64,000 bases of DNA, taken from the IMG/VR virus record IMGVR_UViG_3300044712_001462, positions 1-64,000 of that record, one strand, 5' to 3'. The notes below the pieces were generated by a model. It was not told the origin of the DNA. It searched no databases and was given only the letters and a program-made list of their open reading frames with translations. Both the position numbers and the translations under genes were made by a program. This document shows, piece by piece, positions 1 through 6,959 of the stretch; positions within the stretch are counted from its first letter, which is position 1; the number at the start of each line of letters is the position of its first letter.

Positions 1-441
1 GAAACCACTCATCCAGTAATGCAACTTGCCTTTCATGAACGTGCTGTTGGACAGAAAGATGGCTGCCACATCCTTCTCAGCGGCTCGTTTCGCTTCGTTG
101 TGCGCGTCCACTGAATACTGTGTCAACAGCACGTTAGGCAACGGAGCTTTACTACTATCCGCCGCCAGATCAAACACCGCCCGCGTATGCAGATAAGGAT
201 TCAAGTGGTGTTTCAGTTGAAACGCAGCCACCTTCTCCCATACGCAGACATAGTTTCTTCCACGATGCGAGCCGCCATCCCATCTGGGACCCGGCTTGTA
301 CTTCGTCTGATCATTCTTCCGGTAGCCCCACATGGTGCGTTGATGGATGTACGCAGCTCGAGCCAGACCCGCTGAACTCGAGACCATCTGTTGTGCTAAC
401 CAGTCTTCACGCTTAAGCGGCTTCGTCGTCGGTAGCACCAT
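1..441 (-). CDS. hypothetical protein, 3' end runs off the window (MVLPTTKPLKREDW...PRWDGG...VWEKVA)
   Basis: Open frame read by hand from ATG at 441 to position 1 with no stop; overlaps the helicase stop. Not in the ORF track because it is truncated. Confidence 0.7.
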   Translation of the reverse strand, partial: MVLPTTKPLKREDWLAQQMVSSSAGLARAAYIHQRTMWGYRKNDQTKYKPGPRWDGGSHRGRNYVCVWEKVAAFQLKHHLNPYLHTRAVFDLAADSSKAPLPNVLLTQYSVDAHNEAKRAAEKDVAAIFLSNSTFMKGKLHYWMSGF

Positions 442-1912
442 TCTTCTGTTTCCCGTGTTTGAGCTGGGTCCAACCCTTCTTCTTGTAATCCGCTAATCGC
501 TGAAGCGACTTGCGTTTGAAAGAAGCATCGAACTCGTCCATGTAATCAATCAACAAACCGTACTGCTTGCCGTCGTTTAAACGAGAAAGCCGACCCGGGA
601 TCTGCGTGTCGGCTATCGCACTACTACTAGCATCCGCTCGGATCAGCACTTGCAAATGATGAAAATTCACACCGCGGTTCCACACCGTGGTAGCAATCAC
701 CTTGCGTAACGTACCTGCCTCAAATGCGCGTTTGTTCTCAAACAACTCAGTCGCAGTGATCGGTTCCATCTCTTGCGGAATCAACCCTCGCAACTTGTAG
801 TCATCAAGACTCTCTTTATGCATGTCATTGGGCGCATAGCACAAGGTGAATTCAGGCAAGTGCTTTTTCAGATAACAGGCATGCTCCAGCGTCTCCACCG
901 TGATGAGCACCTGGTCTTTCGGATGCTTCCGGGCATCTTCAGCAATCATGGCGTTACGGTGATTGTTCCGCCAAATACCAAACTTCTTGCGGAACACTCC
1001 ATCCATCCCCGCCGCGGGATTATTCCGCATCATGACCTCTCGCCAATGCACTTGGATGGGAACGATCATGTCGTTCTTCACACCCTCCTCGTACGTCAGC
1101 TTGGTAATGAGCGGACCAAAGATCCCTTCCAGCTCAAAGTCTGCGCCATCAAACCGGTCATTGAAGTTGGCACTCAGACCAAACATTCGCGAATACTCAA
1201 AACGCGCAAACTTCTCAAACATCACATCCGTGGCTAACTCGTGATGCTCATCTGCCAAGAAGATGTCAGTCGTCATGGGATCAATGTGTTGCAGCGATCC
1301 AGAAGAAACACACGTCACGCGGCAACCCATTTGCTTGGAGGAGCCGTTGACTAACCCCACGTCCGGTAAGTGTTTACTAAGACGCGTGTAATGCTCGTTG
1401 AGCACAGACAGGTGCTTTGTACAGATCACAATGCGTGCTCTGGGTAGCACCAAACAGAGAGGCACCATCAACCAACTCTTACCAGCACCCGTAGCCCACC
1501 ATACTTGACCCCTCTGATGGGCTAGCAGACACTCAAGCGTTTCGCGTTGACGGTGCCGCCAATCAAAGCCTTCCGCGTTATCCCAGTTTGGCACAAAGAC
1601 ACTGGCGCGACGTTCTGGCTCGAGATCTTTGATATTCGGCGTATAACCGTTTTGTTTCAAAACATCCGTGATGCGCTGTAAAAATCCCGCATTCGTGCGC
1701 AGCTGTGGTTCTTTGTCCACCGTGAGGGTGTCGAAGCAACGTACGACACTAATCTCCATGGTCCGGCCCTGAGCGGCATCACGCTCTTTTTTAGTCATCA
1801 GCTGCTTACGTCGCTCATACGTCAACGTACGTTTCAACAGATCCGCTAACTCACCTTTGACGTTACGAATGCGCAGCAAATTACGCTGCTTATAGATCGT
1901 CACCGTGCTCAT
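413..1912 (-). CDS. superfamily 2 DExH helicase (UvsW/RadD-like)
   Basis: Walker A ATGAGKS, DEHH, motif III SAN, motif V TTVWNRGVN, motif VI QIPGRLSR. ATG at 1912 follows GGGAG (track start 1924). Confidence 0.9.
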   Translation of the reverse strand: MSTVTIYKQRNLLRIRNVKGELADLLKRTLTYERRKQLMTKKERDAAQGRTMEISVVRCFDTLTVDKEPQLRTNAGFLQRITDVLKQNGYTPNIKDLEPERRASVFVPNWDNAEGFDWRHRQRETLECLLAHQRGQVWWATGAGKSWLMVPLCLVLPRARIVICTKHLSVLNEHYTRLSKHLPDVGLVNGSSKQMGCRVTCVSSGSLQHIDPMTTDIFLADEHHELATDVMFEKFARFEYSRMFGLSANFNDRFDGADFELEGIFGPLITKLTYEEGVKNDMIVPIQVHWREVMMRNNPAAGMDGVFRKKFGIWRNNHRNAMIAEDARKHPKDQVLITVETLEHACYLKKHLPEFTLCYAPNDMHKESLDDYKLRGLIPQEMEPITATELFENKRAFEAGTLRKVIATTVWNRGVNFHHLQVLIRADASSSAIADTQIPGRLSRLNDGKQYGLLIDYMDEFDASFKRKSLQRLADYKKKGWTQLKHGKQKNGATDDEAA

Positions 1913-1981
1913 AGAAACTCCCACAGGTCAGCACGAATAGAAGCGCGACATTCAGTTGTAAGCCAAAGCTACAACTTGACG

Positions 1982-5570: not shown

Positions 5571-6702
5571 CCGCTTCCTCCACCGTTAACCGCTCCTGTC
5601 GCAACATCTGCAACTCAGCAGCAGGATCTTTACTCTCCAGCAAACGATATAGCACCTGGTAGTGCTCATTATCCTCTGGCACCAGCAGCTTCAAGCAGCC
5701 TGCCAGACCGGCCTCAATCACGCGCTCGCGTTCTTCCCGCTCCAGAGAGATGGCCTCGTCTTCCGACTCGCGGACCAACAACTTCGGGAACAGAAAAGCC
5801 GTATTACCTACCGCATCCTGCACGCGCCGCAAAGCCCCTTCCACGTTGTCGTAGAACTTCAACCAGAGCATGGGCTTCTGCAGATGACCGGGTAACTCGT
5901 CGACGTCCAGACCGCTCAGCCGATCCTTCCACGTATCCACAAACTGCTCGAGATCGTCATCATCCGCGATCGTCTCGGTAATAACCGGTCGCGTCGGAAT
6001 CTCATGATGCGTCCAGCTGCCGTCTTCACGCAACAAGTAGTAATACTTCTTCGTGGGTTCATCGATCTTCCGCATATTCGTCGAGCCCGGTGAGTACACC
6101 GTCAGATCCTGACCCGACTCACCAATCAGCTTCAACACCTTGCGTTCGTGATAGTCACCAGTGAAAACCGTCTTGGCATACGGGATCTGGGTAAAACTAC
6201 CCTCACAGGGACGAAGGGCCCCCATAAGCTCCATCCAGACCTGGTGACAGACAAACAAATCGCAGTTCGACGGGATCGCCTTCAACTTCGACGCCAACTT
6301 GTCTCCCGGAGTCCAGTCCAAGCCGTACATCAGCATACCGTTTGGCAACTCCACGGCTTTCTCGTTCAAGTGAACAGGACAGCTGTGCGCGCTGATCGGC
6401 CAGGGCGGATCCGCCATGCAGTGTTGACCCTGGATAAAATACAGATCCAGGCCTTTGTCGCACACTGCTGCGGCTTGCTCCCGAAAGAAACGGATCACCT
6501 CAGAAGGAGGCTTCCGTACATCGAAGACATCGCCTGCCAGACAAATGAAAGATACCGATTCTGCCTCGGTCACTAAATACTCAAACGCCCACATGGCGTC
6601 CCCGCGGAGCTCAGGTTTCGAGCTCCACGCGTTAACATCTAGATGAGTGTCGGCACAGAATAGGCCGACCGGCTGAGCTAGCCGTTTAAGAAGTTTGCTC
6701 AC
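5560..6702 (-). CDS. sbcD: SbcD/Mre11-like metallophosphoesterase nuclease (gp47-like)
   Basis: ADTH, AGDVFD, GQH (GNH variant), CH, GDYH, YSPGS motifs; adjacent to SbcC. Confidence 0.9.
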   Translation of the reverse strand: MSKLLKRLAQPVGLFCADTHLDVNAWSSKPELRGDAMWAFEYLVTEAESVSFICLAGDVFDVRKPPSEVIRFFREQAAAVCDKGLDLYFIQGQHCMADPPWPISAHSCPVHLNEKAVELPNGMLMYGLDWTPGDKLASKLKAIPSNCDLFVCHQVWMELMGALRPCEGSFTQIPYAKTVFTGDYHERKVLKLIGESGQDLTVYSPGSTNMRKIDEPTKKYYYLLREDGSWTHHEIPTRPVITETIADDDDLEQFVDTWKDRLSGLDVDELPGHLQKPMLWLKFYDNVEGALRRVQDAVGNTAFLFPKLLVRESEDEAISLEREERERVIEAGLAGCLKLLVPEDNEHYQVLYRLLESKDPAAELQMLRQERLTVEEADAA

Positions 6703-6959
6703 TCACTCTCCCAGGGTAATTCCACTTCAGGAAATGCACTCCGCAACACATTCCGAATCAATCGCTCCGCCACTACCAACTTCTCTTCCGCTTCCCTCAC
6801 GTTCTCAATCACAGGACCACCAGTTACACCTAACACCGGTAACTGGTCAGCCTGCAGCGCATGCACGTCCCTGCGTGTAGCCCCCACCATGATTAAAATG
6901 CTCAGCAGCTGAGTCCTGTCCAACTTCGGCATGGTTAGCCGATTCTCCGCGTCGGACAT
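6699..6959 (-). CDS. hypothetical protein
   Basis: 86-aa ORF, GAGGAG RBS, overlaps sbcD start. Confidence 0.7.
   Translation of the reverse strand: MSDAENRLTMPKLDRTQLLSILIMVGATRRDVHALQADQLPVLGVTGGPVIENVREAEEKLVVAERLIRNVLRSAFPEVELPWESE

Follow-up and report, generated by a model that had tools for sequence, protein, structure and literature searches.

An apparently disabled IS110/Nop-like protein and a protein of predicted Cas7-like fold in a conserved Mre11-Rad50-helicase operon of large phages

The operon and its two proteins without family matches

The DNA analysed here, referred to as the window, comprises positions 1-64000 of the 224.5 kb IMG/VR contig IMGVR_UViG_3300044712_001462. Since a large terminase and a baseplate gene are also encoded in the window, the contig is assigned to a large tailed phage. 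A single series of minus-strand genes fills the first 7 kb of the window, and in it two genes, encoding proteins designated A and B, lie between those for an Mre11-Rad50 pair and that for a helicase. In the direction of transcription, the series begins with an 86-aa open reading frame (ORF) without family match (orf86; 6699..6959), followed by genes encoding an Mre11/SbcD-type nuclease of the phosphoesterase type with 380 aa (5560..6702; Metallophos, E 1.2e-4; phrog_100, E 5.5e-9) and a Rad50/SbcC-type SMC ATPase with 704 aa (3456..5570; SMC_N, E 2.4e-16; AAA_23; phrog_77, E 2.7e-35). Protein A, with 322 aa, is encoded at 2488..3456 and protein B, with 164 aa, at 1982..2476. The next gene encodes a superfamily 2 (SF2) helicase with 503 aa (413..1924; ResIII and Helicase_C; phrog_16, E 7.8e-24) for which the closest solved structure by sequence, and the sole PDB sequence match, was archaeal XPB-II (E 5e-6); UvsW was not recovered in that search. 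The last gene (1..441), of which the contig end at the start of the window leaves only the 5' part, belongs to a conserved gene of ~240 aa (E 1e-36 to positions 6992-7714 of related locus L083).

The genes are tightly packed. Where Rad50 stops and A starts the sequence is TTAATGC, in which TAA and ATG have one base in common (TAATG), and 11 nt separate the A stop from the B start. The reading frames of orf86 and Mre11, and of Mre11 and Rad50, overlap as well. A preliminary description of this DNA, made from the sequence, had reported a co-oriented, coupled run of SbcD, SbcC, A, B, SF2 helicase and a further gene, with the TAATG overlap and the 11 bp gap; the run was borne out by ORF coordinates and family matches, and the overlap and gap can be read directly. 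The position of the A start, overlapping or abutting the Rad50 stop, suggests that the two genes are translationally coupled.

Neither A nor B matched Pfam, PHROGs, NCBIfam, PADLOC or the sequences of the PDB in single-sequence and profile searches, and both were absent from 50,697 GenBank phage genomes searched with megablast and tblastn. The A family was found to comprise 1040 cluster representatives (50% clustering, E<=1e-3), every one of ~270-356 aa. The AlphaFold model of A, with a predicted local distance difference test (pLDDT) score of 91.6, follows the RNase H-like order of strands and helices in residues 8-135 and has only helix after residue 140. The best match of the model in a PDB fold search was TIGR-TasR 9mty_A, aligned over the full length with values that are not significant (E 0.2, probability 0.60, template modelling (TM) score 0.33). 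RuvC and Moc1 resolvases and an integrase core were among the weaker PDB fold matches, ranked under TasR, and NurA structures were missing from them. A fold search against BFVD gave no significant match.

The relationship of A to IS110 proteins is seen in its C-terminal half. The IS110 transposase C-terminal domain, PF02371, was the sole Pfam family matched by more than one of the 127 A members scanned, with three matches, the best of which (E 0.028) falls short of the Pfam threshold. This count is no evidence alone because the B family likewise gave seven members matching the spurious KHA family. Profiles were therefore compared by hhalign using an IS110 alignment composed of IS4321 from plasmid R751, IS1000A and IS1000B from pTT27, and IS110-type genes of eight phage records, the 11-sequence version of which leaves out a 59-aa fragment from one of the phage records. 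The A profile matched the IS110 C-terminal domain with P values of 7.4e-5 (10 sequences) and 4.9e-5 (11 sequences), and with a P value of 6.1e-6 and a probability of 85% when the comparison was restricted to the C-terminal halves. The scores of 41-43 compare with values of at most 19.3 for 60 column-shuffled and 40 block-shuffled controls, 12 for a reversed control, 13-20 when A was compared with RAMPs and 15.5 when B was compared with IS110. The signal needs the alignment of 10-11 IS110 sequences, as there was none with the single IS4321 sequence. In the reciprocal direction, a hidden Markov model (HMM) built from IS110 C-terminal domains alone placed A-family ORFs at 19 of the top 20 positions among 9193 ORFs of related loci. 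Two helix-hairpin-helix-like (HhH-like) motifs were aligned, the first reading SFIP......AA.LLA.I.DPRWY in A and SIPGIG..A..L.A.IGD..RF in IS110, and the second KLRSYLGL.P in A and LAAYAGL.P in IS110; relative to IS110, the two are separated in A by a 6-residue insert. By these sequence comparisons, the C-terminal half of A is homologous to the IS110 C-terminal (PF02371/Nop-type) domain. Since HHpred is reported to match PF02371 reciprocally with the Nop domain found in Nop5 and Prp31 (PMC11213020), and since PF02371 was among the profiles used for mining 'Nop domain' proteins in the TIGR-Tas study (PMC12045711), 'Nop/IS110-like' is a fair term for this half of the protein. The link from A to Nop runs via PF02371 (PMC11213020), the direct fold match to TasR being weak.

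Several catalytic and structural elements of IS110 proteins were not found in A. The position of the first RuvC aspartate, in beta1, is occupied by D in just 53% of A members, and no conserved acidic residue was present in beta4 or beta5 of the family alignment. The column aligned to the IS110 catalytic serine, which follows GL.P, varies among S, L, T, I, H, R, K and A. The model contains no beta strand past residue 117 and hence no serine-site beta-sheet in the C-terminal half, a sheet that Nop5 and Prp31 likewise lack (PMC11213020). No coiled coil was found in A, of which the longest predicted helix has 24 residues (256-279); the IS110-like region begins ~8 residues past the end of the N-terminal domain, and hhalign gave no match of A to the IS110 coiled-coil segment. 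The conserved polar residues of A are H116, D122, Y126, H145, D171, R173, R183, R248 and H314. Without DEDD residues, nucleophilic serine, serine-site beta-sheet or coiled coil, A appears to be an IS110/Nop superfamily protein that has been domesticated and catalytically disabled.

In size and build A resembles the IS110 recombinases (IS621, IS4321, IS1000), which have ~300-350 aa, an RNase H/RuvC-like N-terminal fold and a C-terminal PF02371 region that aligns profile-to-profile with that of A, both HhH-like motifs included. Besides the catalytic and structural losses and the insert between the motifs, A differs from them in having neither transposon ends nor an upstream bridge RNA and in its fixed operon position. 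Like the catalytically dead TasR proteins of TIGR-Tas, which are RNA-guided DNA binders or repressors of phages and parasitic bacteria, A is phage-encoded and has ~300 aa. Unlike them, it has no coiled-coil scaffold and no adjacent TIGR array, and it is encoded in a replication operon rather than at a stand-alone locus. The coiled-coil dimerisation element that is missing from A is common to Nop5, IS110 and TasR.

The B family comprises at least 234 clusters, many from contigs of 130-233 kb, and is basic throughout (median isoelectric point 9.6, as for B of the window), with lengths of 147-225 aa. The AlphaFold2 model of B has a mean pLDDT of 74, with values above 90 in the core and low values in the loops. 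It consists of an N-terminal first strand (residues 2-10), a helix (48-62), two strands (73-80 and 110-117), a second helix (123-137) and a last strand (150-157), which form a single beta-alpha-beta...beta-alpha-beta RRM with a long insertion past strand 1 and a hairpin between strands 2 and 3. Helix 2 is joined to the last strand by a glycine-rich loop (residues 134-150) containing four glycines; within it G134, G138, G148 and S140 are invariant and P141 and F150 nearly so. After the last strand there is just a short variable tail and no second RRM. An RRM and a glycine-rich loop with a helix on one side and the last strand on the other are hallmarks of the RAMP/Cas7 group (Makarova 2011, PMC3150331). 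The PDB fold search with B returned 28 matches at E<=1e-3 (best E 4.9e-5, TM ~0.5), and the top 50 matches were RAMPs without exception (50/50) and nearly all of the Cas7 type; most were Cmr4, Csm3, type VII Cas7 or type IV Csf2, and a few were Cmr1 or larger type III subunits; the query-normalised TM scores were mostly 0.46-0.58. An acidic C-terminal tip like that of single-stranded DNA-binding protein (SSB) was considered for B and rejected, the tails being variable and disordered and opening with a basic patch.

No link between B and RAMPs was detected at the sequence level. None of 118 B members matched the Pfam RAMP families, and hhalign comparisons of B with seven T. thermophilus RAMPs gave null-level scores. 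The score of 11.6 against a 9-sequence Csm3 profile was also at null level, and that profile misses the genuine RAMPs Cmr1, Csm4 and Cmr3 too. Like the Cas7-group RAMPs (Csm3, Cmr4, type VII Cas7, type IV Csf2), B is basic, is built on one RRM, carries insertions where Cas7 has its lid and thumb, and has a glycine-rich loop that joins helix 2 to the last strand, past which nothing follows. It differs from them in being shorter (147-225 aa versus ~200-300 aa), in matching neither the Pfam RAMP families nor, by profile, Csm3, Cmr4 or Cmr6, in lacking a catalytic aspartate in the beta1-alpha1 loop, and in being linked to Rad50 and an XPB-like helicase instead of a CRISPR array or other cas genes. 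The model therefore supports a description of B as RAMP-like in fold and hallmark loop, a statement made at the fold level only; B is not claimed to be a RAMP by descent.

These results bear on three statements of the preliminary description. The label 'Nop/IS110-like' for A agrees with the profile-profile comparison, the reciprocal HMM ranking and the weak fold match to TasR. The label 'RAMP-like' for B held for the fold, the top 50 PDB matches being RAMPs, and failed to find a counterpart in sequence. The view that both proteins are apparently non-catalytic is in accord with the missing DEDD residues and serine of A and the missing aspartate in the beta1-alpha1 loop of B.

Conservation of the locus and search for guide elements

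The gene order was compared in 68 loci, of which 61 were IMG/VR loci obtained by an A profile search and seven came from other assemblies. Wherever the contig reaches, Rad50 lies directly before A and the SF2 helicase after it (68/68 loci), with Mre11 further upstream. The A proteins of these loci are 22-63% identical to that of the window, and the relatives are phage contigs, many of 150-230 kb, which are taken to represent a large clade of uncultured phages. Conservation of the gene order in related large phages, which had been set beforehand as a refutation test of the proposal, was thus observed in the 68 loci. Besides the conserved gene of ~240 aa, the downstream region of the relatives encodes a DnaB-like helicase and a DnaG-like primase, together with a family A polymerase whose N-terminal domain resembles uracil-DNA glycosylase (UDG). 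Since their neighbours are resection genes, a helicase and replisome genes, A and B sit in a core replication/recombination module.

B adjoins A in 54 of the 68 loci, corresponding to 48 of 58 distinct A sequences. In the loci without B, nothing related to B was found within ~7 kb, and some of these loci have no space for a gene between A and the helicase. The tree of A shows B present in the deepest branches, and its absence amounts to six changes by parsimony, at least three of which are forced by well-supported branches. Evidently, A can work without B at this locus. Three or more losses of B from loci that retain A, Rad50 and the helicase make an obligate ribonucleoprotein of A and B unlikely. 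Small ORFs found at the place of B in loci without it were examined as divergent B and ruled out, as they are not related to B. One such place, in locus L023 (7837-8899), is filled by three tandem paralogous ORFs of ~120 aa each (pairwise E 1e-16 to 1e-25).

No array was found in the 64 kb window by Tandem Repeats Finder and a repeat search, and the window gave no Rfam match. Tandem Repeats Finder together with a k-mer scan for interspaced repeats also found no array in the 68 related loci, which total 986 kb. A periodicity scan (16-80 nt units, >=40% invariant columns), which recovered 20/20 synthetic dual-repeat arrays, found none in the 68 loci or the window, although it would miss imperfect stem-loop arrays. 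Near A and B there was no cas gene, PADLOC match, transposon end or spare non-coding space. The absence of cas1/cas2, transposon ends and an array, remarked on from the sequence alone, is accordingly true of the 64 kb window and the 68 related loci. Since neighbouring genes overlap or abut in most genomes, the locus leaves no space for a guide encoded in cis, as in IS110 and TIGR-Tas systems. Nor is A a mobile element with ends coding for a bridge RNA, as it overlaps the Rad50 stop, lies 11 nt before B and occupies the same place in 68 loci.

The operon is preceded by a promoter-like site on the minus strand (7073..7100; TTGACG, 16 nt, AACAAT), both hexamer regions of which are conserved in L080, a relative with 63% identity. 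The transcription unit upstream is closed by a terminator-like hairpin on the same strand (7132..7158), which has a 10-bp stem and, after it, a run of T. A promoter-like site of its own and the preceding terminator-like hairpin point to an operon with its own start. The 5' leader contains a hairpin with an 11-bp stem (6978-7012, minus strand), and another of ~9 bp (1940-1975) lies inside the 57-nt gap between B and the helicase. The leader of L083 has a hairpin as well, and the leader hairpin sequences are not conserved among relatives. The hairpin of the 5' untranslated region was therefore rejected as a conserved element, the promoter alone being kept.

Several features elsewhere in the window and in the relatives were recorded. 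An ORF-poor stretch of the window (19350-20170) contains two copies of a 115-nt element (19378-19492 and 19588-19702) with an identical 78-nt core. The core carries a perfect hairpin, CATATACAC...GTGTATATG, followed on the minus strand by TCTCTATAGGAGAGAG. There are just two copies in the window, perhaps representing a small RNA or a promoter/5' leader that was duplicated. The GC skew is strongly negative (-0.13 to -0.30) over positions 1-18000, a region of minus-strand gene calls, and about zero or slightly positive past 28 kb (28000-64000), even though large ORFs in that part are again mostly minus-strand. Among the relatives, the helicase frame of L029 (9925-12711) and L066 (8326-10986) has ~890-930 aa versus ~500 aa, for which an intein or a fusion is possible. 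The family A polymerase with the N-terminal UDG-like domain (PF03167) was located at 16369-19434 in L001, at 17135-20566 in L004 and at the downstream ends of L005-L007. HldE-like genes (PfkB kinase and CTP_transf_like) lie just upstream of Mre11 in L004-L007, the two halves being fused in L005-L007 and adjacent in L004. Together with a GT9-like gene of L005, they occupy 1894-3482 in L004, 1-637 and 13588-14535 in L005, 1428-2921 in L006 and 1190-2731 in L007. In L005 a GT9 heptosyltransferase-like gene precedes the polymerase, and the HldE-like and GT9-like genes might indicate sugar modification of DNA or of another target. A CsrA-like gene (PF02599) is found near the module in two distant relatives, L005 (1590-1826) and L080 (1294-1485).

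Interpretation and rival explanations

It is considered highly probable that A is a disabled IS110/Nop protein fixed in the operon, that B has a Cas7-like RRM fold, and that the arrangement is ancient and conserved and is not a transposon, CRISPR or TIGR locus. For the function of the two proteins a tentative proposal, given a little less than an even chance of being correct, is that A and B are guide-independent nucleic-acid-binding accessory factors which couple Mre11-Rad50 resection to helicase remodelling in recombination-dependent replication. DNA ends would first be resected by Mre11-Rad50. A would then hold a branched, single-stranded or hybrid intermediate via its HhH-like C-terminal and dead RNase H-like domains and would act as an adaptor at the Rad50 complex, and B, if present, would clamp or coat a single strand (ssDNA or RNA) as Cas7 does CRISPR RNA (crRNA). 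The helicase would remodel the resulting D-loop, R-loop or fork, after which the DnaB-type helicase, primase and PolA encoded downstream would begin recombination-dependent replication, a programmable guide not being required. In T4 gp46/47 with UvsW, and in archaeal Mre11-Rad50-HerA-NurA, an end-resection pair is encoded with a helicase and small nucleic-acid-binding accessory proteins near replisome genes, and the operon of the window is like these modules in its logic. A and B are not known to be related to UvsY, UvsX, gp32, HerA or NurA.

Several observations weigh against this interpretation. The mechanism suggested for A and B is inferred only from predicted folds and from neighbouring genes. 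The N-terminal domain of A has no sequence similarity to the IS110 RuvC domain detectable by hhalign, and eight conserved polar residues of the A family (H116, D122, Y126, H145, D171, R173, R183 and R248) could form an unrecognised active site. The RAMP assignment of B derives from a model of mean pLDDT 74 built from 11 sequences and has no sequence-level support, and the family has an invariant H102-E103 pair. Lastly, the guide search reached 64 of the 224.5 kb of this genome, and an RNA partner encoded elsewhere in the genome is possible, both parent lineages being best known as RNA binders.

The last point leads to the proposal that A, with or without B, is a true RNA-guided module in which a guide encoded elsewhere directs Mre11-Rad50 and the helicase to specific DNA. 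The purpose could be the choice of an origin or recombination site, or the attack on competing genomes. All characterised superfamily members of A (IS110, Tas, Nop5) use guide RNAs, catalytically dead TasR proteins of about the size of A are RNA-guided DNA binders, TasR is the best PDB fold match of A, and the fold of B is that of the crRNA backbone subunit. Since an array is detectable in just ~1/3 of known tas loci (6,685/20,096), the failure to find one is not decisive. However, searches of the window and of 986 kb of related loci yielded no array, the window gave no Rfam match, and the guides of IS110 and TIGR adjoin their protein gene, whereas here neighbouring genes overlap or abut. In addition, the coiled coil is missing from A, B has disappeared at least three times, and a core replication-operon gene in >1000 lineages suits housekeeping more than conflict. 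An RNA-guided module is thus judged unlikely, and only a small chance is given to the view that A and B are RNA-holding parts, using a trans-encoded guide or an origin transcript, which choose where Mre11-Rad50 and the helicase open DNA. The 'RNA-guided system' of the preliminary description received no support from the window or the related loci, given that no array was found in either, no Rfam RNA in the window and, in most genomes, no room for a cis-encoded guide, and that A is missing the dimerisation element. The ribonucleoprotein of A and B envisaged there is unlikely, if meant as obligate, on account of the losses of B. Its fallback, that guide use was lost and that the proteins are DNA-binding or annealing factors, fits the evidence better than the guided reading.

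RNA might also be handled without a programmable guide. A and B would then recognise RNA-DNA hybrids, such as origin R-loops or primers, and pass them to the UvsW/XPB-type helicase and the replisome, which would tie transcription-primed initiation to recombination-dependent replication. Both proteins have RNA-binding ancestries, their genes lie between an end-resection pair and the SF2 helicase, DnaB, primase and PolA, and T4 UvsW, a helicase of the same broad class, acts on R-loops. Against this, the sole PDB sequence match of the helicase is XPB-II (E 5e-6) and not UvsW, and B was lost in several lineages; the explanation is regarded as improbable. It is very unlikely that the proteins are anti-defence decoys, phage mimics of Cas7 and Tas/Nop that soak up host crRNAs or tigRNAs. 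Non-catalytic, phage-encoded copies of guide-binding scaffolds would suit that role, but counter-defence genes are usually variable accessory genes, whereas very divergent genomes keep these genes at a fixed place in a core replication operon, A adjoining or overlapping Rad50, and B shows no sequence affinity to Csm3- or Cmr-type proteins. The conserved synteny refutes a chance insertion into the operon of an active or recently decayed IS110 element, or a remnant CRISPR locus, leaving it a negligible probability. Distant family resemblance alone speaks for such an event, and the same position is occupied in 68 loci at A identities down to 22%, without flanking non-coding ends, with overlapped neighbours, with the DEDD residues and catalytic serine missing family-wide, and without cas genes or arrays.

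Significance for phage replication and for the two protein lineages

No paper was found that describes the A family, the B family or their association with this operon. The IS110/Nop/Tas and Cas7 RAMP lineages are known almost solely from RNA-guided systems, and proteins resembling both are here encoded by unannotated core genes of phage replication and recombination, carried by over a thousand sequence clusters. The finding is viewed as a further IS110/Nop domestication together with a non-CRISPR RAMP fold and not as a categorically new system. Many large phage genomes from metagenomes contain these two 'hypothetical' genes, which can now be named, and their products form what the models suggest to be a compact pair of candidate nucleic-acid binders. 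Should RNA-dependent targeting prove true, the B family would keep a stand-alone form of the Cas7 RAMP that is pre-CRISPR or was exapted early. If the assignments hold, A would represent a third domestication of IS110-type proteins, besides Nop5/Prp31 and Tas, and the first tied to Mre11-Rad50, and B would represent a rare RAMP-fold family outside CRISPR-Cas that bears on the origins of RAMPs.

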